A stretch of 64,000 bases of DNA from Podarcis melisellensis. Taxonomy: Eukaryota. The first letter of the stretch is position 1. The number at the start of each line of letters is the position of its first letter. The stretch lies in NCBI GenBank assembly GCA_964234715.1, contig OZ174276.1; one strand, 5' to 3'. Below, one piece after another: positions 9,379 to 64,000 of this stretch. Position numbers and translations under genes: made by a program. Under the pieces are notes generated by a model, which did not search any database, was not told the DNA's origin, and was given only the letters and a program-made list of their open reading frames with translations.

Positions 9379-9511
9379 NNNNNNNNNNNNNNNNNNNNNN
9401 NNNNNNNNNNNNNNNNNNNNNNNNNNNNNNNNNNNNNNNNNNNNNNNNNNNNNNNNNNNNNNNNNNNNNNNNNNNNNNNNNNNNNNNNNNNNNNNNNNNN
9501 NNNNNNNNNNN
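9379..9511. other. Assembly gap (133 N)
   Basis: Run of N. Confidence 1.
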
Positions 9512-31805: not shown

Positions 31806-34800
31806 CAAGGTCAGGAATGTAGCTGTTTGCATGGTGAGGCCCTGGGCCCCGCAGTTCCATTAGATAATAAACATACAGACACAAATGTTTAAGTTAATGG
31901 GATAAAACAGGCCACAACTTTATTGGTTACAGAGGTGAGCAGCTTGGCTTAGGCATTGGGTGAAACCGGATTATATCCTGACTCCTGCACATCTGCAGGG
32001 AGTCTCATAAGGGTAAACCACTGGTAGGGGGAGCCCTATGATATACATCGATTAAGAGCACCCCCAGGGTCCCCGATGGGGTCAAGACATGGCTTTGGAC
32101 AGGATCCACACGCCCGGGTCCCTTTAACAGGATACCCTTAACGTGGAGGGGCAGGCAGAGGCAACAACCTCCCCTCCCACAAACAAGGCTTACCAAATGT
32201 CTAACCACCACTCAAGCCCTAAAGGCTCGCCGCCAACTTAAATGGCTAGTGGCCATGCCCCCGGCCAACCTGATTGGCCAGCTGGGGGGGCGTGATGCGG
32301 CTGGGAGTCCCTATGACTTGGGTGGCATCCCTCCACCCACAGCTGGGTTACTGGGAGGTCCTGGATGCACTCCTGCAACACTGTCTGCCCCCCCCCCCGG
32401 GAAAGGGAGTGGACTTCCAGCATGCAGTGTGATCTTCATAAATGTGGGAGAGGAAAGAGGTTTGGAAATATAGGCATAAACTATTCAACTAGATCTAACG
32501 GGTAGGCTGATCTTTGTTGTCCCTGAAAGCCCAGAGGATACTGTGCAAATATGTACAATAACTTCTTTATGCTACATGCTGTTTTTTCAAAGTTCTCTTT
32601 GATCAACAGGCAAGCCTGGGTGGCTGTGTTAGGATGATTGTAACAGGAGCCGCTCCTGCTTCCCCCACTGTTCTGGGCTTCCTTCGAGCAGCCCTGGGAT
32701 GTCAGGTATGTTGCACCTGTACATTTATCCTGTTGCACTTTTTATTTCCTAGCTAGAAGTTCTGCTACCATTAGGGGAAAGCTAGATTGTTAAAAATGAG
32801 CTGTGGTATTAACTAATAACACTGTGGGAACTAAACACATCCATAATAGAAATAGGGAGAGTTAAGTATTAGGACCATATAAAGAGCCATGTTTACGTAT
32901 AGCAAGTCCCTTGCAAAAGTAATAAGCTAATGGTAAAGATCTGATCAGAACTTGTGTCTAGATTTAAATTTACAGCTCAGATCAGGTGGGGGAGGTACTA
33001 TAGACAGATTGGGGCCAGATTTGTCTGCCTTCCAGATCTGTCTAAGGGGAATCCCCCTCCTTGGATGCCCCTGTGTTTCCTAGATACCATTGAAGACCTC
33101 CTATTTTAAGAAACAAGTTGGATGCACCCACCCTTCTTAAATGGGTGTTCAAGGTGGCAGGGATGCTGAGTAAGACAAACCCAGCTTGCAGTGTCTTTCC
33201 TTTTTCTTTAGCAGCAACCACCAACAGGCCTTTTCAGGGGTGGGCAGAGGTCTGTAGCACTAAACTTGACCAATAATTGGCTCATGCCATTCTCAGCCAG
33301 CTACTAGTGGTTTTCCTAGCTTGCAGTACGAGTTCCAAAGTGCATCCTCTTCAGCTGCTCCCAGAGTTCCTACAAAGGAGAGATTTCTCCCCCATCTTTA
33401 ATGTCTTTCTCCATCTCTAAATTCAGCAATCAGAAGCTATTATTGTACACAATTGTAATTTAGATTGTGTTCTTCCTGAGTCCCAACACTGGAGAGAAAA
33501 GTATTTATTGCTCATTTATTTATTTTTGGCCTTCAAATAAAATGGTGAAATTAGCATCATCTTGTTTAAATGATGCAGGCCTCTGAATACCTGTTCTGCC
33601 TCTGAATACCAGTTGCTGAGGATCGCAAGTAGGAGAATTCGTCTGTCCGCTTGTCCTGCTTGAAGGATTCCAACAGGCATCTGATTTGACTAGATGGAGC
33701 TTTGGTCTGACCCAGTAAAGTTGTTCTTATTTTCTTACATACTTTTGACAGGTATATGAAGGCTATGGTCAAACAGAATGCACAGCTGGCTGTACCTTCA
33801 CTACTCCAGGGGACTGGACATCAGGTAATAAACCAGGCAGGGTACTGAATCATCAATTAATCAATTGCCTTTTTACGCATCGTGAAATAATTCACAGATA
33901 AATAATAAAAACAGCTAAGAAGAATTGTAAAAACAATACATAAACCAAATAAAGTTAGCTGTGAAAACAGTACAAAATGAACATCAAAGACAGGGACCTT
34001 TTCATCCAGCTGGAAAAGCTTGTTGAAACAAATATGTCTACCATTTCCCCACCAGAAACTACAGATAGTGGGCACCTTTCATATCCCAAGAGAGATAAAT
34101 GTTCCAAAAACAGGAGCAGCCACACTGAAAACTCTGCTTTGAAATACTGTGGCTTCTGATATTTCAGAGATTTTGAGGATAAACTCCTGTAGAATGCAGT
34201 GACCTACTAGGTATATGAGGAATAAGGCAGTCCCTCAAGAAATTCTGTTTTAGAATGCAAGTTTAATTAGCTTATTTAAGCTTGAAAACAATTAGGTCAG
34301 AATCCTAAGATGCTATGTATGTGCGTGCAGGAGAATGACGTGTAATCGTGATATACTTTGCAGCTTTGGGCTCAGCGTTTTTCACTGCCAAAAAGGCAAG
34401 CAGCTTTAAAAACCAATCAGTGGTTTGTCCCTTTTCTCACTGAAACAACAGCTGTGCTCAGCCTAAACAAATGCTACTTACCAGTATGCGTATATCATTT
34501 CTTTAGATCCCAGCTTCTGTGACTTACGATAATCTGTGGCCCTGTTTGGATTTTGTTTCCTCCTTTGGATTGTCCTTAGAAAGAGATGAGCTCTGGGTTA
34601 TATGTGCTCTTTCCCCTCACTCCTAATTACCATTATTATTTTTCACTAGGCTAGCAATAAAACTGCATCTTCAGCAATGTTCAGATACTTTTATGATAAT
34701 AATCTGCTGTAGTCGTTTTACTTTTGTTTTTCTTTAATTTTTTTTTAAAAGACGAATGTCTCCTTGGCAAGAAGCCAGTGACTCGATTGCAGAGCAGTCT

Positions 34801-37800
34801 CCTTCACCAGAGAGCACTGTGAACTGCACTGCCACTTTCATAAATCTATGTCAAGGGATTAGATCCTGCACTGGGCAGGTTGTTGGCCTAGATGACCTTT
34901 ATGGTACCTTGCAACTTAAAAACTATCATCTCTCTGTGATTTGCAGGTCATGTTGGAGCACCTTTGCCCTGTAATTTAATCAAGCTGGTGGATGTTGAAG
35001 AACTAAATTACTTTTCTTCTAAAGGAGAAGGAGAGGTAACATGCACTCTTCCTGAACTCTTTGCTGTCTCACTTGTAGTTTAAAAAAGCCAATGAACCAT
35101 TTTCCAGAGACAAGATCTGTCACTCCTTTACAGGAGATAGGAGGGTGCAAAGATATATATATATTTATTGAGGACATGACCAACAAGCTCAGGTGCAGGA
35201 AGAGGTTGCTCTGGTGCTCAGAAAGGCAAGCGAGCAAGTCGGGCATTGGCTCTCATTCTTTCATTTCAGTACTGATGATCCAAACTTCATGTAGGGTAAT
35301 AGCAAGAATTCCTGGAACTGACAGGAGCTGGGAAGGGACAAGGTTCATGACATAACTCCTTAGAAGCCTAGTTTAGGATGAACAGCTAAAGGAAAATAGG
35401 CACAATGAAATATACACAGCATCCTTGGAGTAAGATAGTGGCAGTGGAGTTAGACATTCATCTTGTCTTGCTGGCCAGGATTAGTATTGTGGTGAGGCTG
35501 CTTTCTGATTACTGTGGACTATTATTTTGGATTTGCCTTGAAGGAATGCAGGAGCACAGTTTGGTTTTGAACAAAAAACGGTTCATCATTAAAAGATGGT
35601 TTCTTGGTTCTCTCTGGAATAATTTTTTTTGGGGGGGGGGGACAAAGAAGAGTGGCACCTGAAAGTCCAGCAAATAAGTTATAGCGCAAACTTTCATAGT
35701 CTTAGGGCATAAGTTATTGCGGACTATGAAAGCTTATACCATGAGGCATTTCTTAAGTCTTCTACAAGACTCTTTCTGCTGCAACAGTCTGATATGGCAA
35801 CACACATTTCACACCCAGCTGACGATGGTGTAAGCAAAATATGTGCATTTGAGAAAGAAACAGAAGAGCAACTGGAGTTTTGGAGACAGAGAAAGCTTGG
35901 AGCTGTAAGCTAACAGCAGCTGAGGAGGAAGAAAGGTGTCTTTCTCTGGCAATCTGGTGTGGGAGCAGTGGACTGGCTTTGTTGAATGTTAAGCTGTCTG
36001 CCTCCACCTATGCTTGACTTGCATATATTTATTTAATACATAATTTTATTTTGCAAACTGCAGTACAGTAAACAACAACAACAAAGCAAAAGGTTGCAGA
36101 TTTCTCATGCATTATTGTTACAGGATATAATTGGGGGGATAAGAATTAAATAATAATAATTAAAACAACTATCTGATATAGCCTCTCCAAAATACAGCAC
36201 AGGTAGCTGGATAAATTTGTAAATAAACCCAAATATTACAAAACATCCTAAATTGCAAACGATGCTTCTATCCTGCCTGTTGTGCATCTAACAGTATGTT
36301 GTGTTGGCTCAGGCTGGTCTTTACTCAGATAGAACAGAAAACCTTCACTCAGGAAGCATTACACATGTTCCAGTCTACTCATTGTTGGCACAGAGTCCTC
36401 ATAGGCAAACAGCTGTGCTTCTAGAACTCACAGGTCCAGCTTCCTGAAAGTCTCCCACCTTGTGTCAGTGGTGCCAACTGTATATTTGTGTGATTGGCCC
36501 TCCCCTCCCCAGAAAAGGGTTATGCCAGTATTCAGTGGCATGTGATTATAAAATAAGAGTTCCTTGTGTGGCTCAGTCTAACCCATAGGCTGAGGTTCTT
36601 GAAGACTTTTTGCCTATATATTCATCATTTGTGTGAAGTTATAACAATTGGCCTAAGTCTCTCTTTTTAAGTCTACCTTGCAGTGTACCAGCAAATCTAT
36701 CTCTTGCAGATTTGTGTGAAAGGTCCAAACGTTTTCAAGGGCTACCTGAAAGATAGAGAGAAAACCACGGAAGCTTTAGACAAGGATGGATGGCTTCATA
36801 CTGGGGATGTCGGGAAGTGGTTGCACGTATGTACTGAAATGCAAACTTTGCACACTAAGATTGCAGGTTTACAAGCCCCTCTGACCAAAGGAATAAGTGA
36901 ATTAGACATTGATGTGTACGTCAGATCATGAGTATAGTGGTGGATAAATATTACTACTGTGTGATGTGAGTATATGCCAGACCCACATCAGGGTTCAGCT
37001 CCAACATGGTTCCCTTCAGATTCCAACCCTCCCCTGGCCTTATTTTATGGGTTTATAGGCTACCTCATAGCAATTGTCACAACTTACTGGTGGATAAGGA
37101 ATTGGGTTGGGAAGTCTATGTGGGTGGGATGGAGGCTCCTCCCCTGCTCCATGGTCACAGGGTATCCCCTTAATGGGAGCCTGGGGGAAGTACTTCTTGT
37201 TCTGATACCTAGCTTGGGAGCTAATGGGCTACAGCACCCCAAATGGTGATTTTGGGGTTTGCCTGGATATGATACATACTGTGATATGTTTCTGTCCCTG
37301 TGGGGTGACCCATAACCTTGATCAACCCTGCCAGTCATCCACCAGCAGTTGGGCTGGTTGAGTTCAGGATACCCACTCAATGCCTACCCAAAACCTGCTG
37401 ACGCCTATAGTTGTAGCCTGTTTAAATCCCAACATAGCTGTTCTTTGTGTTGTTGTCATTATACCTAACAGCCTCCCCGCCCGTGGCTCTACTATACCTG
37501 GGTCTGCCACTTTCTGTTAGGTTTCATAGATATTTGACCTTAGCTTCTTTGGCCAGTCTGAGAAATTTGAAATCTGTTTGAATTCTGCTGCTCAAAAGGG
37601 ACCCAGTAGACTGGAGCTGAGTTACAGGCAAGGCGATCTCACTTTTCCCTAGCTCTATGTGATTACTTGCTGCTGCATAAGCGAGTCCCCACTTGCAGAC
37701 TTCCCTTCGGCATCTGATTGGCCCCTATGGGAGATAGGATGCTGGACTGAATTGGCCTTAGGCCTGATCCAGCAGACAGACTCTTCTTACATTCTTATGT

Positions 37801-40800
37801 TATTTTTTACTCACAGAATGGTACACTTAAAATAATTGATCGAAAAAAGCATATATTTAAACTGGCTCAGGGAGAATACATTGCACCAGAGAAAATTGAG
37901 AATATCTACATTCGCAGCGAGCCTGTTGCCCAGATATATGTGCATGGAGATAGTTTACAGGTAACGCTATCCATTTTCTAAACATTCCTTGAAATTTGGT
38001 CATGCCTTTTATACCATTTTGTTTTGTTTCCTGGGTTGGGGGGGTTGCGTTTAGGAACAGGCAAGGTGTCATGTTTATTCCGTTTAATAATGTTCAAAAT
38101 GGATACAAGATGTTGGTGTCTGTTACCTGCTGAGCAGGTAAGTTCAGCAGCTAGATACATACAGTAGTTTAATGAGAGGAGCACAGCATTTGCTCACTGA
38201 TGTCCCAGGCACGAGGCATTCTAGGACATGTAGCAAACTTTCTGGCGTAGTGGTCATTGATTGACCTGCATACTCTATAAAGTCTGTATAGATCAATAGG
38301 GAAACAACTGCATAAGCAGAGTCAAGCAACACACCCCACATGCAGATTTTGTAACATTTGGGGCCAGCCTCCTGATGGAACTAGAAGAGCTGAAGGACTA
38401 TGGAGGAGAAGTGGGAGTAACCTTACTGCAGAACTATTTACTGTATATGGAAGCCATTATCAAAAGTTAAGAGAACAGAGCTCTGCTCTGAACCTACACA
38501 CACACACAGAGTGCTCTGACTCTTGTGATAAGCAGAAGCTGCTGTATCATTGTTTGAGGAATGGGGGCAAAGGGCAAAGAACTTGACAAGCACTCTTATA
38601 TAGAAAGCACAGATAAGAGGGCACAGCAAAATTCAAGGGATCAAGAAGGGTTTGCTGTGTCACAAATACAGTCCCCAATTTTATCTGTATCGTTGCAGGC
38701 CTTCCTGGTGGGGATTGTTGCACCTGATGCTGAAATCATGCCAGCCTGGGCCAAGAAAAGAGGCTTTGATGGAACTTTTGCAGAGCTCTGTAAAAATGCG
38801 GTAAATTGCTTATGCACATGCTCCTGTGCAATTCAGTGCCAATTTGGGCTGTGTGTGCACAGACAAACATAGATTATAATTCTAATTGGTAGATCAGAAT
38901 TTGCCAGTGCACTGAAAGAGCCTTATGGCGAATGATGCAATATGATAAGCTGAAAGGCCAACTTCAATGTTACATTAAAAGCAGCCTTCCATATCCTGTT
39001 GCCCCCAAGATGTTTTGGACTCCCAACTCCCAGCAGCTCTAGCCAGCAAGGCCAATGGTCAGGGATGATGGGAACTGTAATCCAGAATATCAGGAGAGCA
39101 CCAAGATGGGAATGGCTGAATTAAAACAGTTCAGCTAATGTGTTTGGATCTGACTGTGACCTTTTCTTTAGGAAAAAAGCAGCTATAGGGGGCTCTGAAC
39201 TGGATCAGATCCACAGCACGGAAGGAGGGAGCTTAACTATGCCCTGTTTTCCTGCTAATAATAATGCCCCCAAAGGACATATTTACTGCTTTGGATAGTT
39301 TTCAAGAAAAGGGAAGAGGTGTTTTAATCCTGGTCAGGATCCCCCACAGCTTCTTATCATAAAGAAAGGCACAGCCAAGTCCAAAGCACAGTAGTTAAAA
39401 CTGCTTTTGACATAATGTGTAATTCTGGCTCTAAGTAGCTAGGTGATTACTGTGTTAAGAGACTGGGACATCTGTTAGAAAGATTCCATTAGATAAGCAA
39501 AGCTCTGTCCTATAACAGGAGCTAGTATAACATCTTGGGTTTTTTCCACTTTCTTTATCAGTACTGTTCCATTGCTACAAGATGACATCTATTTTTTTGC
39601 ACAGTGAGATATGCTTTTGTTTCATTTTGTTTTTTGGAGGCTTGGAATGTCTGAGCCAGCGCCAAATCATGTGATTTCTCTGCTGTTGCCTAGACTAGAT
39701 AAAGATTGCAGTAATGTTCCAGAAAGAAGACAGCAAAGCTACTAAAGAGCAGGTTTTATTTCTTCTATGGGTGTTCCAGCACATTTACCTTTGGTGGAAG
39801 CCATAAGCAAAGGACCATAGTTCAGTGGTGGACATATGTACTACCTGAAAAAAGGGGTCAAGATTCTCAACACTCCCTGGATGTTCCAGGAATTGAAAGA
39901 GCCCATGTCTGAAACCCTATAGAACTTCTATGAGTCAGTGTAGGCTATCCTGAACTAGATAGACAAATAGCCCAACTCATTATAAAGCAGTTCCTACGCT
40001 CCTATGTATTTGAATAATTAATTAATTCCCCACTCCTGTGTGACAAAGCCAGGTGGGCTACTACCACTTGAGTAAGGGGATGGAAATATGTAGAGCAGCT
40101 AGGAGTCAGCAGTAGCAAAAGTAAATCCTGGCAACATTCTTGGGATGTTCAAGAAATAAGGCTGTAATCCTATCCCTGCTTACCTGGGAGTAAGTTCCAT
40201 TGAACTCAGTAGAACTTACTTCTGAGTAGATGCCTACGCTATAATCCAGCGACTTGGTTATTAGAACACTAAGGAAGTAGACTGTAAGCACTTTCTCTTT
40301 AGATTGCCAGCTGATCAAGGCTGGGAACTGGTCTCTGTGCAAAATGCAATTCATATTGACAGCATTAGATAAATAACATTGAAAATGGCATCAGTGTAAG
40401 GTATAGGGAATGTTTTCTGTGGAATGGAATGGAATCTACTATTTTTGAACTGGCATTATAAGATACAGTTTCAGTCACTGAACTCCTTTGTACTTTAATT
40501 TTAAATGCAAAGAGGAAAGTGAGAGCTCTGAGCTCTGAGAACAAGTTCCAATACAACATGCCAGAATAAGAATTTAAGTCTTTCCCCTGCAAACATATGT
40601 TCATGCTTGGGAAATTTAAATCAAAGAGGTATTTCAGACACTTCTGCATGAAGACTACAGGACCAGAATTCCTTAAGGATGGGCAATGTTTTTCAAGCTG
40701 AGAGCCACATAACCTTCTGATCAATCTTGCAAGGGCCAAAATGGGTGGAGTAACAAATGTAATTTTTACCTTTTGTACAATAGGCTATTTTGTACTAACA

Positions 40801-41673
40801 CTCAAGCACCCTGCCTCTATCCTCCCCATAACAGAGTTCAAAGACACATTCCAGATGGGCGTATTTGGAGTGCAAAGCTTGGCATGTGAAGGGTATGACC
40901 TGAGGAGAATTTCAATGGCCAAAGAGGTCTGGGGGGCGGGGGACGACGACACACAATTCATCCCTCTGCCTGATATTTCCCATCCTTGTCCTACATAGTA
41001 TAATCACATTTCATCCTCTGTTTCTTTGAAAAGTTAATTGTCAATAAAGAGCCAAATAAATAATTATTTAAATATTGGAACATTATTTGAACAGGACTTC
41101 CTGGCTGTAAATGTTCTCATATGTAACAGGACTTCCTGGCTGTAAATGTTCTCATATGTTCTTACTTAGGAGCTCAAAAAAGCAATAATGGAAGATATGG
41201 TGCAGTTAGGGAAAGAGAGTGGACTTCATTCGTTTGAACAGGTAAATACTAAATACTGATGATAGCTTTTGATTACTAGATGCAGATGAGCTGCTTCTTT
41301 GTGATTGAATAGCAGGAATTTTAGCATGCATTATGTAAAAGCCCCAATGCCTCGCTTATGCTTTGTGGTTCAGTACTCAAATGTGTGTTTTTCTATGAAA
41401 TAAAACTATCCTTGTCTGTTTATGAATGCATGAAAGGTAATGTTAAAGAAGGTCTCTCTATGATAGATAACATGATAAAATATTTGAAACACCATTCCAT
41501 TCAAGCCAGAGCAGTATTGGAAAGTCAGCTTAATTACCATTCTTGTAGCTGACCTGGAAAATACAGCTGTTCTGTTTGTCCCCCATCCATGGACTAATCT
41601 CCTCCTGACGTAGGTATTTTTGTGGCAGACCTACAAACCTTCAATAAGGGAAGTTCAAAAATGGACATAATGT

Positions 41674-41754
<81 letters not shown>

Positions 41755-43560
41755 ATCTTTTAAGAAGTGTGATCTAAAACAAGGTCATGTTGTGATTCTA
41801 TTATTTTTAAAAACACAAATGTAACAGCTGTAACATTCGTATAATGACATAAATTTCTAAGCGTGCCTGCATTTGTGCACTAGATTTGGCAACAGCATAA
41901 TAAATGCACTTGCAGTGTCATAATGCATACACTAAACAAGAATAGAGACTATAGAAACTAATTCCACATAAAGCTTTCCTGCTTTTTCAAAAACTGGTCT
42001 ATAAAAAAATGTTGAGAACTGACTGTCTCTTAAAATTGCTTTTTTCTCCCATGCTGTAAACCTCCCTGTGATGAAATATACTAATCTATCAATTCATCTA
42101 ATATAATCCTTGGGGGGTATGGGGGGCACATATGCCTGTGTTCTCTGCAGCATTTCAGCACTGTGTAGTGAGGTGGGCGGGGGGAACCCTCCTAAATGAA
42201 TTCTTAAAATCACAAGCAGGAAACATGGGTACAAAGAAGATATTAAGGGCAAAGCCTTTCCCTCTATAGTCACTGCCAGCTGCTTGGGTAATGATTTTGG
42301 GTGTTCTTAGCTCAGGGAGGCAACAAAGAATCAAAAATATGCAAGTTGCGTTGTACCCAGTACTTCTTATAATGAGCTCCTGACACTTTAATGAACAAAT
42401 GCACATTTAAACATCATAGTTTCCTATGAGGTCTATATTCAGGATTAACACATGATTTAACACTGCTTTCTGCAACATAGAAGATGGATGGCTAATGTGT
42501 TACTCTTTAATTGTAAAAATGCAAATAAAACATAAATGATCCTTAAGTTGCTTCCAGAATTAATGCTTAGCACCAACACATTTTTAACAGCAGCAGCAAA
42601 GATTTTGCCAACATGAAACTTTGAAGTGTGCACTGCAGTTCATTTTCAGTGCTAAAGGTAGTCAAGTGTTTTTAAAGTTAAAATTTAATTTTCCCTAGCG
42701 CCAGTTATTTCTGCAGAAGGTGGAGAGAACTCAGCATGTCCTCATTGTGTCTCAATCCTAGAATCAAGCCTTTTAAGATTGTTTTTGATGCAGAAATGTA
42801 TTTTTAAAAGTCTGTTGATAAAATATACCTTGTGTCTGCCATTAAATGCCAAGTGATAACAGCAACAGCCAAATTTAGAATTTCTGTTCCAATGTCTCTG
42901 GGAGATATATACTAAAGCAACAGGGACAGAACCTCATCCATGCAGCAAGCTACCTCATTCTCAAATAAGCATGCGCAGGATTGCACACTAAATTTGTTCA
43001 CCTTTCAATAACAAGCCACGCAAATAAAAAGCAACAAAACTTCTAAATATCTAAATAGTCTGGGTTGTATTAAGGAGCCAGATAAACAAAAATACAGAGT
43101 GACTGCTTACTATAATTTATGCTGTAAAAGTCACATGCTTTGCCCTATAGGGGGGACCTTTTGTTCAAAAAGCCAGTGTATTGGGCAAAGCTAGGGACAT
43201 TATTGATGAATTGCTGCAACTAAAAGGCCGAATTTAAAAGTAGGCAGGTGTTAGCACTGAGCTATTACATCCTACATAGGAGTGGGTGTGCAGAATAATA
43301 CTTGGCAGAGTGACCAATGTGATATGTCTGGAACACAGCTATCAAATCAGCCGTTTCCTTTTATTCAACGTTAAAGTATATTTTTATAAACATGTTGACT
43401 TGTTTTCCCCCCCTCATAGGTTAAAGCTGTTTACATCTACCCCGAAATGTTCTCTGTACAAAATGGTTTGTTGACACCTACGTTAAAAGCTAGGAGACCG
43501 GAGCTGAGAGAATTTTTCAAGAAACAGATAGAAGAGCTTTATTCAAGCATCTCCATCTGA
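10911..43560 (+). CDS. ACSL6: Long-chain-fatty-acid--CoA ligase 6, spliced CDS: join(10911-11105,14523-14637,15571-15635,17453-17554,17651-17750,19324-19502,20079-20111,21122-21173,22963-23036,[25945-26022 OR 26086-26163],28099-28233,30329-30463,32610-32705,33752-33824,34947-35035,36710-36826,37817-37960,38699-38800,41170-41241,43420-43560); 2097 nt, 698 aa plus stop
   Basis: All introns GT-AG with consistent phases. Translation has the AMP-binding P-loop [19 protein letters not shown] and the FACS motif [26 protein letters not shown] and the gate pair KVIFPRQDD / SQWSPTFED are diagnostic of ACSL6 rather than ACSL1 or ACSL5 (recalled sequences). Confidence 0.97.
11800..12240 (-). mobile_element. 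L2/CR1-clade LINE reverse transcriptase fragment
   Basis: [16 protein letters not shown]...[16 protein letters not shown] resembles the RT motif QSGFRPGHSTETAL...LDLSAAFDTVDH. Confidence 0.8.
14523..14637 (+). CDS. ACSL6: ACSL6 exon 3
   Basis: ctgtag|GGC...TCTG|gtaagt; [38 protein letters not shown]. Confidence 0.95.
15571..15635 (+). CDS. ACSL6: ACSL6 exon 4
   Basis: ctttag|AAAAT...GAG|gtgagg; [22 protein letters not shown]. Confidence 0.95.
15797..16252 (-). mobile_element. Solo LTR (Gypsy-like)
   Basis: TG...CA termini, flanks TCTGG/TCTAG (5-bp target-site duplication with one mismatch), AATAAA on the minus strand near 15867, CpG-rich. Confidence 0.65.
16399..16424. repeat. (TG)n microsatellite
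   Basis: Direct reading. Confidence 0.95.
16716..17062 (+). mobile_element. Sauria SINE, near full length
   Basis: Same head, B box and body as 4134-4494. Confidence 0.9.
17209..17300 (+). mobile_element. 5'-truncated Sauria SINE
   Basis: gatgagtgccgcaacccc...gactggacctaatggtcaggggtccc duplicates about 16976-17055. Confidence 0.8.
17453..17554 (+). CDS. ACSL6: ACSL6 exon 5
   Basis: tttcag|GTT...GAG|gtgagc; [34 protein letters not shown]. Confidence 0.95.
17651..17750 (+). CDS. ACSL6: ACSL6 exon 6
   Basis: ttccag|TGG...ACAG|gtaaaa; [33 protein letters not shown]; follows a 96-nt intron. Confidence 0.95.
19324..19502 (+). CDS. ACSL6: ACSL6 exon 7
   Basis: gtttag|CTGAT...GAG|gtaagg; [14 protein letters not shown]...QAMQEVE. 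Confidence 0.95.
20079..20111 (+). CDS. ACSL6: ACSL6 exon 8 (33 nt)
   Basis: tttcag|GAC...GTA|gtgagt; [11 protein letters not shown]. Confidence 0.92.
20776..21055 (-). mobile_element. LTR-like fragment
   Basis: GC-rich insert with caggaac/caggg repeats and a minus-strand TATA-like ttttat; boundaries unclear. Confidence 0.35.
21122..21173 (+). CDS. ACSL6: ACSL6 exon 9 (first half of P-loop)
   Basis: ttctag|CCT...ACAG|gtaaac; [17 protein letters not shown]. Confidence 0.95.
22963..23036 (+). CDS. ACSL6: ACSL6 exon 10
   Basis: ctccag|GTAAC...GAG|gtgaat; [25 protein letters not shown]. Confidence 0.96.
25945..26022 (+). CDS. ACSL6: ACSL6 exon 11, F-gate variant (mutually exclusive)
   Basis: ctgcag|AAA...CAG|gtaaga; 78 nt; [26 protein letters not shown]. 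Confidence 0.95.
26086..26163 (+). CDS. ACSL6: ACSL6 exon 11, Y-gate variant (mutually exclusive)
   Basis: ttccag|AGT...CAG|gtaagg; 78 nt; [26 protein letters not shown]. Confidence 0.95.
26544..26679. mobile_element. Palindromic hAT MITE with perfect 8-bp target-site duplication; older copies near 19880, 22725, 38985, 45348, 48385, 50140, 53235, 61082 and 62846
   Basis: CAGGCATAGGCAAACT...AGTTTGCCTATGCCTG; GCCTGAGG at 26536-26543 and 26680-26687. Confidence 0.92.
28099..28233 (+). CDS. ACSL6: ACSL6 exon 12
   Basis: tcacag|TCC...AAG|gtaagc; [20 protein letters not shown]...RLLNRMYDK. Confidence 0.96.
30329..30463 (+). CDS. ACSL6: ACSL6 exon 13
   Basis: tcttag|ATC...CAG|gtaagg; [22 protein letters not shown]...LFFNKIQ. 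Confidence 0.96.
31767..31804. repeat. (TG)n microsatellite
   Basis: Direct reading. Confidence 0.95.
31801..32430 (-). mobile_element. LTR-like or DIRS-like repeat; related element at about 36975-37510 on +
   Basis: Minus strand AATAAAGTTGTGGCCTGTTTTATCC vs ATAGTTGTAGCCTGTTTAAATCC near 37407; both end TGCCAC. Confidence 0.45.
32610..32705 (+). CDS. ACSL6: ACSL6 exon 14
   Basis: caacag|GCA...CAG|gtatgt; [32 protein letters not shown]. Confidence 0.96.
33752..33824 (+). CDS. ACSL6: ACSL6 exon 15
   Basis: tgacag|GTA...TCAG|gtaata; [24 protein letters not shown]. Confidence 0.96.
34947..35035 (+). CDS. ACSL6: ACSL6 exon 16
   Basis: ttgcag|GTCAT...GAG|gtaaca; [30 protein letters not shown]. 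Confidence 0.96.
36710..36826 (+). CDS. ACSL6: ACSL6 exon 17
   Basis: ttgcag|ATT...CAC|gtatgt; [15 protein letters not shown]...[14 protein letters not shown]. Confidence 0.95.
37817..37960 (+). CDS. ACSL6: ACSL6 exon 18
   Basis: tcacag|AAT...CAG|gtaacg; [48 protein letters not shown]. Confidence 0.96.
38699..38800 (+). CDS. ACSL6: ACSL6 exon 19
   Basis: ttgcag|GCC...GCG|gtaaat; [34 protein letters not shown]. Confidence 0.95.
41090..41159. repeat. Perfect 35-bp tandem duplication
   Basis: AACAGGACTTCCTGGCTGTAAATGTTCTCATATGT at 41090-41124 and 41125-41159. Confidence 0.95.
41170..41241 (+). CDS. ACSL6: ACSL6 exon 20
   Basis: acttag|GAG...CAG|gtaaat; [24 protein letters not shown]. Confidence 0.95.
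41681..41754. repeat. Compound (CT)n(CA)n microsatellite
   Basis: Direct reading. Confidence 0.95.
43420..43560 (+). CDS. ACSL6: ACSL6 last coding exon, TGA at 43558-43560
   Basis: tcatag|GTT...; [46 protein letters not shown]. Confidence 0.96.
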   Translation, partial: VKAVYIYPEMFSVQNGLLTPTLKARRPELREFFKKQIEELYSSISI

Positions 43561-46500
43561 CACCAGGGGAAAATTCTTCAGAATAATGGACTCTGTAGCA
43601 ACATTAGGATAATACTGAAACGTGAAAAGGGCGCAGTTGAAACGAATAAGCATCTGACCTTCCACGCAAGCCTTCTGTTGTCGGAAGACACCATCACTGA
43701 GTAATTCTTTTACCATCTAGTTCTAGTTCCTCTTGTTGTAATGGATGCTTTTGAAGATTGCTTAAAAACATATTGGACAACCGTTAAGCTACTTTCAATC
43801 CCACTCCTTCTGAAAGCATTTTACAGACACCTTTGTTATTAATACCTGCAAAACATAAACAAAGATCCCTTAGCAAACAGGAAAGAAAGATTAGACCTGC
43901 CCATTTTGTATGACACTCCTCTAAGCTCCTGGATGATTCAATAATGTGATAGGGTTTCCAGATGTCTCTCTGTATGGGTACCATTAAGAACTCTTTAGAA
44001 GCAAGCAGTTCCCAGGTTGCACATCATGCACACACCTTCCTTAGCATGGTACGGCACCTTCCTTCGTGTGGTGTAGCTTCACCCTTGGCTGCTACTGCGT
44101 GCATATGTGGCCAAGAACTCCTCACTGCAACTGAGCTCTTAAAAGTACCAGGGTCCCACTCAGCGAGATATCTGACAAAGACTAGTGGTCTACCTCAATG
44201 TTCTTGGATGCTCAAAGCCAGAAATAAATCTGTTACCCTGATGTAGAACTTAAAACTGGAATTGTTTAATCGTTCTTTAAGTGGTAGCACTTATGCTTTC
44301 CCTGCAAGACATAAATTGAATTCACCTTGTGCGAGCCATTCACGAAAAGAACAGAAGGGAGGAAGAGTCTGGATTTCATATGTATGGAAGTAGGAAGAGC
44401 TTTGGATTTCATGCCTACTTAATACAATGTAGTGGCACATGCTGGGTGAATGCTAACCTGTAATTGCCAGAAATGTCAGAAATGTTACAGGCCCTGGATT
44501 TTTTTGTATTTCTTGTGTCTTGGATGTTTCTGAAATTAGCAAGGGATCTCTGTGGGCTGCTCCTTTTAAAGAACTGACTGCCTTGTGTTGTGGCAGCTAC
44601 CTGACAGCAACTTGCAAAACAGAAGGGTAGTTGGTATAAACATGCTGCATAATTTTGCAGCTTCCACTCCCCACCACCCCAGTGGATTCCAAATAGAATA
44701 GGATTTTGAGTCAGAACTTTCCCTTTGCAGCACTTTATAGCGGTGCACTTCAGGAGAACTGAGCTGGCTTTAAATAATTTAAAGAGGATGCAGAGTCTTA
44801 ACAAACAGCTTTTTGGCCACATCATCTGACTTTAAAGCAGCTTCTTCCAGCTTCTTCTTCCACCAGGCTAGCTTCTACTCCAAGTCCCCACCTCTTATTC
44901 TCATGCATTCCGATAGCAAGCACTTCTAAGCTAATAGCAGTAAAGGCTTCACTCCCTTGACAATGGCCTTGAGAGGGATTCACTTGACTGAATAATAAAA
45001 ATAAATGTAGAAAAAGAGCCTGTTCCCATATTTTTTTAGGCCAACACCTTAGAAATTTGCCTAAACAAATAAATGTCTCAGTGGAGAAACTAACGCTTGC
45101 TCTGGAGAACCTGCACAAGCCTTCTTATGATGCCCAGGAATTGCAAGTAGATCAGGGATGAGAACAAGCCAGGTGGTGCTGGACACCCAATGCCCCATCC
45201 ACCAGCACATCCAGTAGTCAGAGCTGATAGGACTTGCTGAAGTTCCCTCTCTCTTATGCAACTACTAAAGGTGCAGGGGCCATGTCCCCTTCTGCATCTG
45301 ACTACTTTAAATATAGTTTTCTGCTCTGAAGTAGTCATTTGATTCAAGGGTTGGGGAACCTGCAGCTGGGCTAAAACTCCATTCACACCTGACAGCTGAC
45401 CATGCTGGGTGAGGCTGATGGGACTCAGGAGTTCAACACCATCTGGAGGGCAACAGGTTCCCTACCCTGGCATAGTTAGTACTAGTACCTGCATACAGGA
45501 GGACACAAGAAGATCTCTGCTGGATCAAACCTAAACCCAGTCTACTCCACCATTCTGTTTCTACAGTGGCCTGCCAGGTGTTCATGGGAATCCTGCAACA
45601 TGAGTGTAGCAACACCATTCCTACTTGCATTCCTAACACTGGCGGTAGATCATAGCTATCAATATTAGTAGCCATTGAAAGCTTTACCCTCCATAAATTT
45701 GTCTCTCTTTTAAAGCCATCCAAGCTGGTGGCCATCAATATCTTGCGGTAGTGAATTCCACAATTTAACTATGCACAAAAATAGCATTTCCTGAAACTTC
45801 CAACATTCAACTTCATCGAAGTTCTATATATACTTTCTGCACATCATGCATAATTTCATACACCTCTGTTATGGATGCATGTTTGCCTTTTCCCCAAACT
45901 AGAAAGCCCTAAATATTGGGATCTTTCCTTATAAGAGAGTGTATTGTATTGTTTTGGTTGGTCCTTCCTGCACAACTATTCCTCATTGGTGGCTGTGGCA
46001 CGGTTAGGTGAATGTCTGAGTTCAAATGCCATAGCTATATGAACACAGCCATAGAACCAAATCCAGTGCTAACAGATTACACGGCTTTCTTGAAACTGTC
46101 TCCCCAGACGTAGTCCAGATTTTCTAAAGTTCTCAACACACAGCACCTAGCATGGAGAAAGAAGCTTGTGACCATATTAATACAGGAGCTGCTTCTGATG
46201 TAGATCAGCATGAGTGGAAAAGCTGAAAGGTGGTGAATAGGATGGCAAGGTTCAAAAGAAGGCTTTCTGTATAGAAGAGGGAATTTTAGCATCTGCAGTC
46301 TGCATGACACCTGCTGAATTTCCCCATATATATCACTATTCAAGGAGCGGTAACTTGTCTTTTTTGCACCTGGAGCTCCCTAATGTTACTTTTTCCATGA
46401 GGAAACCTGGGAGGTTTTAGGACATCTGAACTATCCATGAGACATCAAGAAGTCTTGGGCTTGTTTGAGTTGAAGTAGACCTACTATCTCCATATCATCT

Positions 46501-56580: not shown

Positions 56581-57528
56581 CTCAGGCAGTATTTGTATTA
56601 TTTAATCCAAACGTTTCATTTTCTTTTCGCTTGGTTGCATGATCTTTTGCCCATAGCACTGCAGGCAGTCACAGTTAAAGGCATATCCACGCTGAAACAA
56701 AAAGTGGGTTTGGAGGTAGCTTGCAGCCTGAGGAACCTTGGGAAGTGTAGTTCTGTGAGGGAAGCAGGGCTGCTTGCCTGACAGAAAATAGTCAGCACCT
56801 TCAAAAAGTTATAATTCACAGAGTGGGCAGGGAACAGTAGCAACAGTTGACAGTGATTTTTAGGTATGTGTTGCAGAAAGGGTATAAGTGTGGTGAGTAG
56901 GAGGTGGTAACATTCAGCAACAAAATCCTATCATAACTAGATTTAAACCAGCTTAATAGTCAAACGATAGTTTGAGGGATGGAAATGCTTGGGATCTTTA
57001 ACCAATAACTCAGTCTTGTTTACTAATCTACAGCTCCCAGGATTCTTTGTGGATTCATGGGAGAGAAAACTGCCAAAGGTTTATATAGTAATTTGAGTGT
57101 AGGGTGTTTGGCGCTTGAAATTATATTCTAGCCAATGTTTGTTTTTTGAAGTGTGTGTGTGTGTTTAATTTGGTGGGGGGATATTTGGGTTTAGAATTGA
57201 ACATACTCTCTGGCACACTGCGCTCCAGTGAAAACATTTCTGTTCTGTGGGGCTGACAGCCCCTTTATACAGTGAGTTAATATAGGATAATATGGGGGTA
57301 AATATGGATTTGTTTAATCCTTCAGGGAGTAAACCACAAGAGCTTAAAGAAGTTTCAAGAAAGCCAGCAATCCACCAATAAGACTCTTCCCTTCCCTAAA
57401 TGTCATGGTTTTGGTTTTTCCTGGCATCTATGCTTGGATTATATTTTACTTGTCAGAATCTCTTTTCTTAGTATTGCCTCTTACCGCTTTGTAGGCAGCA
57501 TTGCTGTGAGGAAAAGCAAATAAAGAGG

Positions 57529-57631
57529 ATGGACTGGGTGAAATTGCGTTCCTATTCCCGGAAGAGGCGGGCTCAACAGAATGTCCATTGTGCATCTCCT
57601 ATCCCAGCTGCGGCAGCATCTGCTGCTGTAG
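57529..57631 (+). CDS. MEIKIN: MEIKIN-like coding exon A (exon probably starts at 57495; alternative phase-1 donor at 57712)
   Basis: MDWVKLRSYSRKRRAQQNVHCASPIPAAAASAAV vs recalled human MWPLRVYTRKKREGQR; acceptor tttgtag|57495; donor GTAG|gtgaaa; syntenic position downstream of ACSL6. Confidence 0.75.
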
Positions 57632-59138
57632 GTGAAAGGAATACTAAAGCCAAAGGGAGTCGGCTGCGCCTAGATCTGCTTTCTGGACCTCGGCAGGAAC
57701 CTCATGTCAGAAGTAATCATTCATGCAACTACCTTGTCCTTCCCCATCACATTCCTGTTTGTCTGGATTAATTACAATATTTGTTGTGTCTTTGCGTAGT
57801 GGCACAAAGGCCCTAACTACTCTACTGTGTACTGTCTAAAAATGTGTAGAATGTACTCTTAATGTAGTCACTTTATGTACTCTTAATGTAGTCACTCTTA
57901 ATGGAAACACTTTATTGGTGAAATTGGTAGTGGGGAAGAGGGTGAGGTGTTTGTGAATGTGTTGGGGGCTTATCTCACCTGCTATGTCTTGATGAGTATT
58001 GTAGAAAGCTGCTTGGCCTGCTAAATGCATTACATGGGACACAGAGATGGGGCTTATTGCTTTCCTCAGTTTGGTTTGTATTCATAGTTTTTGTCACAGT
58101 TGCTCAGACCCTGACAACACTGAGCTCATTACTCCAGTATGTGCTCCTTCTGCAACACTGAATGTCAACAGTGAACTCGGTCCTGATGTCAGTCTTTACC
58201 ATCCCAGCTAAAAATCACCAGCTGCAAATACAAATCAACTGTCCCCAGGGCACACAAGGATGAATCCTACCCTTTGAGCCACCTCACAGTGGAATCCTGT
58301 CTTAGGATGCAAGCACCATTGAACCTAGTGAAACTTACTTCTCGGTAAACAGGCATAAGATTGGGTCTTGAGCCAGTTGCTGTTTTGCTTTTTCCAAGGT
58401 TCTCACTGTTTTTGAAAGCAACACTCCTATCACCTGGTGTTTTTCCAAGCTGTTGAATCCCCACCCTCTCAGGCCACTTTCTAAATACATACCGTACATA
58501 CGGACTTTATGCAAACAGAACACTGATGTTGCCATTCAAGAGTGGTGGTTCATCCAAGTCTCCTATTTTGGAAATTTTTGATGGTGTTCACAGTTATTTC
58601 CCCCACACCTGCAATGGTTAGAAACAGCCATTTTTATAAATTGTGTGTGGGTGCCACTGACAACAACACCTGTTCTCATCTGTCGCCAAAATAATTTGCC
58701 CCTCTTGAAATGCAAAGAGCAGGTGGTAAATCTGAATATAGTTATGCACACTTAAGTCAGTGGTGGACTTTGGTCTTTCAGATTTCAGTGTCGCCTTGTG
58801 GGCAGCCAAAATTCAGCACCCCCCTTCCTCTCACCACCTGTTTGGCTCAATTCAGTACATCATAGTTGTGGTTCCCCCTATTGCGGTAGAACCAGTCATG
58901 CTGCCCTAAATCCACCTCTGCTTAAATCCTGTTGTTCCCAGGGGGATTTGCAGATTATTCTCAAATATTTTTGAAGTAAAGTGTTGCTTCATTGTGACAT
59001 AGCCCTCAGTCACATGACAAAAAGATCCTTGTTAGGGGGAGGAGGATAAAGACCAAGTATGGCTGCAGTCTTACCATATGGAGTATTTACCTGTGTGAAG
59101 AATAGGTGGAAATGTAACCTGTTGATGATTATTCTACC

Positions 59139-59285
59139 CAGTGCTTTTTTCTTGGGGGACGCAGGGGGACGCATACCCCTAAACATTTTGTGAATCTAGG
59201 TTTAGCCTCATTGAGGGGCAGTATTTCAATATGAGTAGGAAAATGAGAGCACCCCTAAACTTTTTTTTAAAGAAAAAAAGCACTG
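59139..59285. mobile_element. hAT MITE with perfect 8-bp target-site duplication
   Basis: CAGTGCTTTTTT...AAAAAAAGCACTG; ATTCTACC at 59131-59138 and 59286-59293. Confidence 0.9.
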
Positions 59286-60957
59286 ATTCTACCTAAACAG
59301 CTCTTAAAACTGTGCAGCAAAAGCCTTTGATCCAGATAGGCTTGGTTTACCAAGTGCATTAAATTGGACTGTCAGTAGGGGGAGCTTTTTGCCTTCTGAT
59401 ATTGTACTAAGTCTTGGGAGCATCAAGATTTGCCTTAATTTCTTTTTTAAAGAAACTGATAGCAAAACCTGATGAAAATTAAAAGGTGCAAAGGAGTTGT
59501 TCTTGCAAATCTCTGGAGATTGAGAGCTTAACATGTGTCTTGATTTCACAGTTGTACTAGGACCTTCCTTTTGAGAGCAGAAATTCCATTATAGTGCAAC
59601 TCTGAGGTTTTCTTTTGCTCATTCTTTGTTGACTTGCTAGAGTTGTGTTGTCCGTAGCCGATACACAAACGAAACAAATGTGGAGTAATCTACTGACCTT
59701 GAAGAGAATCTGTTCAGGGTGGGTTAACATGCTTTTTAATGCACCCAACTGTATGTGCACATGTCTTTGCTTTGTTTGCATGCCAAACTATGGTGTATCA
59801 GGGCTGTGCAGACTCCTGAAGAGGATCTCCCAGCTGCTTTACTTCCCCCAAGTCATTTTACTCCTGTACTGTGATGAGTTTGGGTTGGCTTAGCTTGTTG
59901 TACAAACCTAGGTTCATGGTTAAGCTCTTTCCTTGTTTACCATGAGCTGCAACCAAGAACAAACCATTCAGTTACTGTGACATATGAACTAGTCCTGCAT
60001 ATATTCCCATACATTCCTAGGCAGCCGCACCAATTGCAGAGTGAGGAATGGCAGGCCAGCCTAGGCAAACTGTTTAATGGAGCATTCCAATAAATGATCT
60101 CGCAGTGAGGTTTAACAGAAGGGTAAGTAGGCCATTCACCCAGTGTTTAGCAATCTGCTGGGTGAAGTGTTTGCTGCCCTCCATTAAATGCAATTGCAGC
60201 AGGGAAGGGTGTTTCACCAAGCAGTTTAGCAAGTTGCACTTTGAAGGCCCTCTTCATTAAACCTCTCTTCAGCCATGTTTGGTAATCTGATGGGTAGATG
60301 GGAGCTTGCATCCAACACACCATATCCTTCAACCCTTGCCCCCGAGGTTTGAAAGCCCCATGGGTCACTTGAAGTCCCAACAATCAGGGCTTCAAAGGGA
60401 AACATTGCCTGGTGTCACTATGATGTCAGGTGGGCAGCATGGAGGTCGGGGACGGACTATGGGGTTTATGGGTGAAGTTTAAAGAATGGGGAGTTAGCCC
60501 AGGGGGTTGGTGAGCAGGGGCAGAACCCCTTGTGTGTGTAAGTGTGTGTGTATGCATCTATGGAAATGTAAGTTGAGTGGCTAATATACACTCAAAGAAA
60601 ATGTGCACATAATCCATGAAGAAGAAACTGTGTACATTCCCTGTTCAATATAAATAATCTCAAACAATCATGGAGGAATGTGCATATCTCGGTTTGAATT
60701 TTGCACATACTCGGGGCACCAGAAATAATTACATTGAAGCCCTTCACTCAGCACCTGTATACAAGTTGGGTGAATGCCAAACAACTGTGACGTCTTAACA
60801 CAAAGAGATGATTCTTACTCTCTCTTTACAACAGAGCAAACACTTTGGGTAAATGTAGGACTTTAGGTTAATATCAATTTATACAGTTTATACAATATTT
60901 GTTCTGTTGGATCATAATCCTGTGTTTGGCTAAACATTCGCTTTTTTCTCCCTGTAG

Positions 60958-61048
60958 GACAAATTGGAAATGCCTTTAAAAAAGCATTGCCCAAAATTCA
61001 AGAAGCCTCTGGGGTGACCCAGATGGACTGTCTTTCAGTGGAACAAAG
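60958..61048 (+). CDS. MEIKIN: MEIKIN-like coding exon B (phase 1 to 2)
   Basis: cttttttctccctgtag|GA...CAAAG|gtatag; (G)QIGNAFKKALPKIQEASGVTQMDCLSVEQ; LPKIQE vs recalled human LSKIAE. Confidence 0.75.
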
Positions 61049-61468
61049 GTATAGATTCCAGTTATTCTATTATTGGATCTGGGGGAAGGTCTTGAGCACT
61101 TGAGGCCCCATAGATGTTGTTGGACTACAAATCCCATCAACTCTGACAATTGGCTATGCTGATTGCTTGGAGTCCAACAACTTCTGGAAAGCACCAAGTT
61201 CCACACCACCAGTCTAGAAACTGTCAATATGATGATGCAATTCAGCTTTAATTGTATTTATAGGCGTTATGGCCAGGACAGGAAGGACTTGCCTTGTTTT
61301 GAGCAACATCCCCAGAGCAATAATAATGCCAATTTCTGTTCTCAATGTGTTGGTTTAAGTTCAAATTAAAAGAAATCATTCTTCTCAGAAATTCCAGATA
61401 TCAGAGTTGGTTTGAAATTGCCTATGAAAAATACAGACCCATATTTGTGCTGTATCCCCCCCCCATAG

Positions 61469-61547: not shown

Positions 61548-62541
61548 GTATGTATTTAATTGTTAAACCTCTTAAATCCCAACAAATCTATGTACTACTG
61601 GTAGGGTAAAAACGAAAGACTGCTGCACCTTCAGAGTCCAGCCAATCAAAATACATATACAGTATTTTGTATGCAGCCAGTGGTGTGTCATGGAGCTGGT
61701 TTGTACATCACACTAAGCCAAAATCACAATTAAGCCATGCTAGCTCCTAGGCAGCATGGTAAGTGGTCAGGGATGATGGGAGTTATAATTCAAAATATAT
61801 GGAAAGCACCAGGTTGTTTCTGTATGTATTCTGTGGTTCTGACTTTAAAGTGGGGGCAAATCCATCTCTCTGAGGTACGTGGAAATATCAGGGTTTGCAG
61901 TAATCACCAGCATAATTAGTGTACCAGCCTCTCTGATTGCTGGGAGAATTTTAGTGTGGAGGAATATTAGAAGTCATACTGTTTCAAGTGGTTGGTGTGG
62001 AACAGATGAATTGTCATAAAGACCTATGAATATTGTCCAGGTAAGTTCATGGCTATGCTCTATTCACATTGACTTGGATAGTGGCTGGAAATGTGCATCA
62101 ATCACAATGAAATTTATACAAGTTGACAATACCACTATAGAGGTTCAGTGCCCAGGAAATAACCACCATATGGGTTCAGCTTTAAATTATTCTCTCTGTC
62201 ATGTTAGTCTCCACACAGAACCTCTGATCTTAACAGAGACTGTGCTTGGAAGAAATTCTGGGGCTTTGTGGTGAATGAGAAATTCTCCCATTCTGCTTGA
62301 TGACCTTCTGCAGATGAACAATTTACATAATTTAAAATTGCTTCCATGTGGCCATTGATAATACATTTCAAATCCAAGAGTTGCTCTGATCAATGTTAAG
62401 GAATATTTTGTTAATGACAAAACTGTGCAGAACTGTTTCTTTCTGATAAATTATTTTCATGAATTTTGTATGGTCATAAGGGAAATCACAGTTTTATCTA
62501 CGTCATACCTTGTCATCTCCATCTTTCACTGTTGTTCTTAG

Positions 62542-62602
62542 GATTCTTTGCATTTAAGCTCTGCAAGTAAAGAGAGTGCGAGATATAGTGAAACTACATC
62601 AG
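62542..62602 (+). CDS. MEIKIN: MEIKIN-like coding exon D (phase 0 to 1, 61 nt)
   Basis: gttcttag|GAT...TCAG|gtgagt; DSLHLSSASKESARYSETTS(G) vs recalled human ...NSELVSG. Confidence 0.75.
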
Positions 62603-63972
62603 GTGAGTATGCTTAAGCATACTGGATCAGGAACTGTATTCTTCTAAATATTATTCCAAGTTCCCTAATGTGACTAGTCTTCATGTTAATATTTTAGTTC
62701 CCCCAACCCAATTTTAATTCCCCCAACCCAACTCTGTGGCCAGTGCTGAAGCTTTCCTCAGGAGCAATACATATCACTAGTGTTTCTTGTTCAGCCTTCT
62801 ACATAAGAAGAAGAAGGGCAGGGGGAAAATGAATTATTGGGTGAACAGGAGTGAATAACCTTTGGCCCTTCAGATGTTGCTGAATTACAACTCCCATAAT
62901 CCCTGAGCACTTGGACTGCTGGAAGTTGTAGTTCAGCAACCTCTGGAGGGCCACAGGTTCTTCACCTCTGATCTAGAAATACCAGTGGGTGTTCTAGATA
63001 GCTTTGCTGAATGCTTGGGCTTCAAGTTGGTGCTAGCAGCATTGGTTTTAGGTCATGTACTTGGTTATGTATTATAACTAGAGATTTGCAGACCTTTAAA
63101 AAAAACACAGAAAAACGTTTTTCCAGTTTTTTCCTATTTCCGAAAAATTGGAGGAAAGGTTCTCTTCCCCCCACTATTTTTTCTTGGGGGGGGGGGGAAT
63201 TCCAGGCCTTCACATCACTAATTATAACAGACTTCTAAAAATTCAAGTAGATTTTGAGCACCAGTCTGTAGACCAGGATATAACTTTTAATGCCTTGCGG
63301 ATCTGTATAGCCCAAATATGTGGATAATAACTTAATATTCATTCCCATCAACAATCCTTTTAATTGACTGCTCACAATGGCTGATGTCACCTAAGTCCTA
63401 GTCTTATTTCCACCCTAATCATATTGTGCACTTTGGGTCATTTGGTCCGCTGCCCATCTGATGAAGAAAAGGGATCGCCAGTTACTTTGTTGAAATCCTC
63501 AATATTCTTATTATATTATAAACCTGTTCTGTTCAGTTTAATTAACCATTTTAAACCATGGCACTACATAGAAGTGGTGCTGTTTATCATTTCCAGGATA
63601 CCTACAGTATTTCTTTTATATAGAATAAATATATTACTGCTTATGATGGAAGCTGAAAACATTGCATGTATACTGAAACAAGTGCAGAGGTTTGAGTATT
63701 GGACTAGGAGACTATGGTTCAAATGCGCTTTCAGCCATGAAACTCACTGGGTTACTTTGGCCCAGTTGCCATCTTTCAATCAAACCTCCCTCACAGGGTT
63801 ATTGTGAGGGTAAAAGAGGGATGGAAAGAACCATGTGGATGTATGTCACCTGGAGCTCCTTGGAGGAAATTTAGGACATGTAATATAATAATAAATGAAA
63901 ACTAATCCAATTGAACCTATTACTGTTGCTGTTCTCCATCCTTCTCTCATGTGGCCTGCCTTCTGTTCACAG

Positions 63973-64000
63973 GACTATATTGTATAACCTATTGCAACAT
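63973..64000 (+). CDS. Possible start of the next MEIKIN exon, truncated by the window end
   Basis: Long pyrimidine tract then cacag|GA CTA TAT...; phase-1 compatible, (G)LYCITYCN; too short to confirm. Confidence 0.2.

Follow-up and report, generated by a model that had tools for sequence, protein, structure and literature searches.

The first coding exon of a gene on the + strand of Podarcis melisellensis contig OZ174276.1, probably the lizard orthologue of MEIKIN, encodes within its first 14 residues the peptide R7-S8-Y9-S10-R11-K12-R13-R14 (57547..57570; positions are those of the window, the whole 64-kb stretch of DNA that was analysed). Its RSYSR core matches the consensus of the YSR/PIM class of PDS5-binding peptides, and the overlapping RKRR run resembles a nuclear localisation signal (NLS). 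The likeliest single reading, though still less probable than not, is that residues 7-14 form a docking site of this class which would fit the APDAP (HIM) pocket at the N-terminus of PDS5A/B, and lizard MEIKIN would then be a candidate addition, put forward with the same reserve, to a ligand class comprising WAPL, sororin, haspin and ATRX. MEIKIN's roles in cohesion protection and mono-orientation have so far been explained via Plk1 alone, which is bound by the C-terminal half of the protein; a direct contact between MEIKIN and PDS5, if true, would link the kinetochore both to the machinery of cohesin release and to the separase switch.

Gene identity and exon structure

Upstream of the motif, on the same strand, lie the exons of an acyl-CoA synthetase gene (33761..43620, end approximate), which by its sequence is probably ACSL6-like. 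Exons were located at about 33761, at about 36800 (encoding HTGDVGKW) and at about 37859, and the last coding exon ends at ~43.6 kb, leaving ~14 kb to the ATG at 57529. On the human map, MEIKIN begins a short way past the 3' end of ACSL6, both genes lying on one strand, and since the lizard window presents the same order, the downstream gene is probably MEIKIN. This call draws on synteny and on the resemblance of lizard exon 1 to the human MEIKIN N-terminus, which presumably contains RVYTRKKR. The separase ExxR site, the Polo-box-binding S-T-P sites and the C-terminal CENP-C-binding domain of MEIKIN would presumably lie past base 64000, the exons within the window amounting, if joined, to ~85 aa.

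Coding exon 1 (57529..57631, +) runs from the ATG to a phase-1 donor, TAG/GTGAAA, and comprises 34 codons and one further base, encoding MDWVKLRSYSRKRRAQQNVHCASPIPAAAASAAV(G); the open reading frame from this ATG begins MDWVKLRSYSRKRRAQQ... The start codon has a good Kozak context (-3 is A, +4 is G), and a CpG island is absent at exon 1. The nearby in-frame stop 5' of the ATG, at 57469-71, overlaps the 'ag' of a possible splice acceptor, and from a second acceptor-like site (tttgtag/gcag at 57495/6) the frame is open into exon 1, so that residue 1 is not provable as the N-terminus from sequence; the ATG at 57529 is nonetheless the probable start, and the motif would accordingly be N-terminal, as the sequence-only reading had described it.

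Exon 2 (60958..61048, +) follows about 3.3 kb behind the exon 1 donor and encodes (G)QIGNAFKKALPKIQEASGVTQMDCLSVEQ between the acceptor ctgtag/ga and a best donor AAG/GTATAG. It stays open only with the phase-1 donor of exon 1, whereas an alternative phase-0 donor, GCT/GTAGGT, creates a stop in exon 2 and was dropped; the two exons thus form a coherent, splice-compatible model. Within exon 2, LPKIQE (60987-61004, +) fits the LxxIxE pattern of PP2A-B56 docking sites; once the exons are spliced as modelled, ~45 residues separate it from the YSR motif. A candidate exon 3 at 62542-62602 (+) is open in phase 0 only, where it encodes DSLHLSSASKESARYSETTS. The best exon 2 donor (AAG/GTATAG, phase 2, after 61048) would make it read R-I-L-C-I-stop, and it fits only the weaker phase-0 donors GGG/GTGACC after 61013 or TCA/GTGGAA after 61037. 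This phase clash implies either an exon 2 that ends earlier than in the model or a true exon 3 at another place.

Among three congeneric species, ~2% diverged by word share, the 103-nt coding sequence of exon 1 shows no differences, and the surrounding sequence differs at 57452, 57459, 57634, 57643, 57718 and other positions. The identity of the coding sequence is not significant, as only ~1.6 changes would be expected in it. No RNA run was found to contain the exon 1 stretch, which, as regards the start codon, is counted against the docking reading. One putative RNA run, whose contig begins at 57561, just past the Tyr9 codon, seems instead to be DNA, at low coverage, from a relative ~9% diverged and was set aside.

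Position and rarity of the motif

Reading the codons shows the coordinates and residue numbers of the sequence-only reading, which had placed RSYSRK at residues 7-12 and the motif at bases 57547-57570, to be exact. The codons are R7 cgt (57547-49), S8 tcc (57550-52), Y9 tat (57553-55), S10 tcc (57556-58), R11 cgg (57559-61), K12 aag (57562-64), R13 agg (57565-67) and R14 cgg (57568-70). The Tyr9 codon (57553..57555, +) would specify the counterpart of the tyrosine that WAPL, sororin and ATRX insert into the PDS5B pocket. With the ATG at 57529 as the start, the motif lies at the extreme N-terminus, and a Pro/Ala/Ser-rich stretch comes next.

RSYSR meets both the strict pattern [K/R][S/T]YSR and the broad pattern [R/K]-[S/T]-Y-[K/S/T/G/A]-[Q/R/K/A]. 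In a six-frame translation of the 64 kb (~128,000 codons), the strict pattern occurs once, at the exon 1 site, the number expected at average residue frequencies being about 0.24. When the 35 residues of exon 1 were shuffled (n=200,000), the strict motif arose in 0.0225% of shuffles and the broad motif in 0.35%, and the motif is therefore rarer than local composition predicts. The uniqueness of the match in six frames and its rarity among the shuffles both count in favour of PDS5 docking. At average residue frequencies, the strict motif has an estimated chance rate of ~2e-6 per position, or ~20 instances per vertebrate proteome, which means that a single match does not validate itself and that context must carry the argument; this chance expectation is counted against PDS5 docking.

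The predicted structure of the peptide counts against PDS5 docking. AlphaFold2, run on the 35-mer alone as a single sequence, a setting biased towards helices, predicts a helix rather than an extended peptide over residues 3-22 (57535-57594), with pLDDT of ~90 for residues 1-20. W3, L6 and Y9 would share one face of this predicted helix, which leaves room for another way of docking or for another partner.

Comparison with known PDS5 ligands

That WAPL and sororin bind PDS5 through [K/R][S/T]YSR and that haspin uses a related motif, as the sequence-only reading had stated, is borne out by the literature: the consensus is stated for WAPL and sororin in PMC8198109, competition of the haspin motif at PDS5 is described in PMC12264150, and the YSR-like motif of haspin also appears in PMC10656103. 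The consensus is located in WAPL region 1-33 and sororin 131-171, and mutations of YSR abolish PDS5B binding (PMC8198109). The tyrosine of the WAPL, sororin and ATRX motifs inserts into a hydrophobic pocket of PDS5B, with the haspin and ATRX variants occupying the same pocket in competition with WAPL; ATRX places Y1419 of its RSYK[Q/K] motif there, and sororin reads KVRRSYSRL (PMC12264150). For a structure of the WAPL motif bound to PDS5B, PDB 5HDT, the papers PMC8198109, PMC10656103 and PMC12264150 cite Ouyang et al. 2016. Short fragments suffice for binding, namely WAPL 1-28, which contains KTYSR, and ATRX 1394-1443 (PMC12264150), and this too speaks for docking by a short MEIKIN peptide.

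The closest positional parallel to lizard MEIKIN is WAPL, whose KTYSRK shares with it the extreme N-terminal location, the YSRK tetrapeptide, basic and hydroxyl residues at -2 and -1, respectively, and presumably a non-globular setting. PDS5B binding has been demonstrated for WAPL and is a proposal for MEIKIN, and WAPL carries FGF motifs and a C-terminal HEAT-repeat domain for cohesin release, neither of which occurs in the two MEIKIN exons of the window. Sororin has the identical RSYSR core, and its full motif is given as [M/W]S[K/Q]KVRRSYSRL (PMC10656103). Its W-S-K-K-V-R-R lead-in resembles the W-V-K-L-R of lizard MEIKIN in that an aromatic residue stands ahead of a basic stretch; two one-residue gaps are needed to align them, the spacing from W to Y differing by two residues. 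Sororin would also resemble MEIKIN in the role proposed here, that of a WAPL competitor protecting cohesion. Unlike in MEIKIN, however, its motif is internal (131-171 in human), an FGF motif follows within 15 residues and a sororin box lies at the C-terminus. The strict consensus fit with a sororin-identical core and a WAPL-like YSRK, the placement in the first 14 residues next to that of WAPL within 1-28, and the sororin-like W-x-K-L-R lead-in are all counted for PDS5 docking.

ATRX, with RSYK[Q/K], and haspin, with its PIM, share with MEIKIN a Tyr-centred [R/K]-[S/T]-Y-x-[basic] motif and a site of action at centromeres, where they protect centromeric cohesion while sitting in the WAPL pocket of PDS5B. 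They provide a precedent for unrelated centromere proteins acquiring the motif. Both are mitotic factors whose motifs mutation (ATRX Y1419A) and competition assays have validated, in contrast to MEIKIN, which is meiosis-specific and whose motif is a candidate. Regulation of cohesion, in several cases at centromeres, is common to all known users of the PDS5 pocket (PMC12264150), and this common role with MEIKIN is a further point for the docking reading. Even WAPL and sororin can do without the motif, and the WAPL YSR is not known to be needed for releasing activity, which counts against docking.

Conservation in human MEIKIN bears on the same question. If the human sequence is RVYTR, Tyr and Arg are kept, and the residue at -1 is Val, isosteric with the Thr of WAPL but outside every published consensus; this presumed Val is likewise counted against PDS5 docking. 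Should the Tyr prove not to be conserved, the motif would be a lineage-specific coincidence within an NLS-like cluster.

Other readings of the N-terminus

It is unlikely that the basic cluster is all that matters here, with R11-K12-R13-R14, together with R7 and K5, forming a monopartite NLS or a non-specific chromatin or DNA contact in which Tyr and Ser are incidental and PDS5 plays no part; an NLS was the alternative that the sequence-only reading had named. Residues 11-14 match the classical pattern of four K/R in a row, the kinetochores where MEIKIN works are nuclear, the literature searched maps no other NLS in it, and basic, Ser-rich nuclear tails raise the odds of YSR-like strings above those for average composition. 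Shuffling, however, produced the strict motif in only 0.02% of cases even with the composition of exon 1, and a classical monopartite NLS needs neither the Tyr, nor the two Ser, nor the exact YSR register. If the presumed mammalian sequence is right, W, L and Y are kept besides the basic residues, and a pure NLS would need none of them. That RKRR by itself would account for a basic cluster is counted against PDS5 docking. The two roles, docking and nuclear import, would in any case be compatible, and RKRR may serve import too.

The N-terminus could also serve a partner other than PDS5, which we consider quite unlikely. It would then act either as an amphipathic basic helix presenting W3, L6 and Y9 or as a phosphosite for a basophilic kinase or of 14-3-3 type, R-S-Y-S having its Arg at -3 relative to Ser10, together with the nearby LPKIQE. 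The confidently predicted helix is consistent with the former, although predictions on short single-sequence peptides over-call helices. RSYS fits the RSxS and RxxS patterns and LPKIQE is LxxIxE-like, but the Pro at +2 of a classical 14-3-3 site is absent, and the literature searched proposes no such partner.

About as improbable is that the match arose by chance, in a lineage-specific, fast-evolving disordered N-terminus, or that the sequence is not coding as read, the start or the exon being wrong. The expected number of strict matches per proteome, the many proteins and motifs scanned in the first reading, the candidate acceptor with an open frame upstream of the ATG, and the lack of RNA support for exon 1 and of database relatives for exons 1 and 2 all point this way; against it stand the phase compatibility of the exons, the good Kozak context, the expected place 3' of the ACSL6-like gene and, weakly, a coding sequence identical in three congeners amid variable flanks.

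A possible role in meiotic cohesion

The docking reading, if correct, suggests a mechanism in which MEIKIN, anchored on CENP-C by its C-terminus at the meiosis-I kinetochore, would insert Tyr9 of its N-terminus into the PDS5 pocket used by the KTYSR of WAPL. PDS5-bound cohesin would thereby be held at the centromere core, or WAPL would be excluded from it, or both, as is done by sororin, haspin and ATRX in mitosis. At anaphase I, separase cleavage frees MEIKIN's N-terminal fragment and would switch the protection off. Generalised to vertebrates, MEIKIN would be a meiosis-specific, kinetochore-tethered PDS5 ligand whose YSR occupies the WAPL pocket, possibly alongside a PP2A-B56 docking motif, and which stabilises PDS5-bound centromeric cohesin in meiosis I until separase cleavage ends the protection; in this full form the proposal is unlikely. 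A B56 site beside a PDS5 site would, by analogy, recall the interplay of Sgo1-PP2A with sororin.

Several observations on MEIKIN would fit such a role. In human, N-Meikin (1-154) shows no Plk1 binding, is lost from the kinetochore once separase cleaves and has no known partner, and the activities of full-length Meikin and C-Meikin differ; both points are counted for PDS5 docking. Under the full proposal, N-Meikin would gain its missing function and the difference between full-length and cleaved MEIKIN would be explained. In fission yeast lacking Moa1/meikin, Mis4-cohesin but not Pds5-cohesin is increased at the core centromere, and in Plo1-site mutants the mono-orientation defect is partly suppressed when wpl1 is deleted (PMC10917647), data which are also counted in its favour. 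The ligand class would be a known one, with new, meiotic and separase-switched logic, extending the theme of unrelated centromere proteins such as haspin and ATRX borrowing the WAPL docking peptide.

Other data from meiosis and mitosis weigh against PDS5 docking. The preprint text on immunoprecipitation of human Meikin from mitotic HeLa cells names CENP-C and Plk1 and leaves PDS5 unmentioned, and in mouse oocytes the bulk of REC8 cohesin resists WAPL. Kinetochore-bound MEIKIN could, moreover, protect only local cohesin. Titles and abstracts of the literature searched, covered from 2020 onward for sororin, contain no motif link of MEIKIN to PDS5 or WAPL and no direct contact between MEIKIN and PDS5. 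PDS5 binding by MEIKIN, with any effect on WAPL, is what the sequence-only reading had proposed, and it stands here as a tentative hypothesis.

Searches for relatives and minor observations

Searches for relatives of the gene were made with several portions of it. The 30-mer of exon 2, picked as query so that retrieval would be unbiased toward the motif, returned no MEIKIN relative in an exhaustive HMMER search against 1.84 billion representatives; its sole match, a 609-aa repeat protein (E 9.8e-4), is spurious. A word-index search with the 80-aa exon 1 open reading frame and a 99-aa stop-free stretch found no relative among the proteins of 44-173 aa that it covers, and as MEIKIN has ~400 aa this blank result is uninformative on full-length MEIKINs. 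Exons 1-3 gave no match in Pfam, being short relative to its search thresholds, and these short exons matched nothing in phmmer against the PDB or in the ESM Atlas. Peptide strings such as RVYTRKK, RSYSRKR and similar do not occur in the full text of the papers searched. A degenerate pattern, M-W-x-L-R-x-Y-[ST]-R-K-[KR]-R, built on what we take to be the mammalian MEIKIN N-terminus, matched one metagenome locus (L001) by chance; the contig is bacterial and carries a 421-aa open reading frame that by eye looks like a HipA-like kinase.

A run of 133 N at 9379-9511 is either a gap in the assembly or masked sequence. Very high-copy interspersed repeats occupy ~59000-59400, ~61100-61200, ~61600-61800 and ~62850-62960, and there contig word depth in four runs exceeds that of the flanks thousands-fold; joints between one repeat and another are numerous. 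These repeats, within the introns of the putative MEIKIN gene, look like SINE-type elements. Intron 1 also contains a tandem duplication of ~24 nt at 57853-57899 (+; gtactcttaatgtagtcact...), and in related species a 7-nt insertion lies behind 57847.
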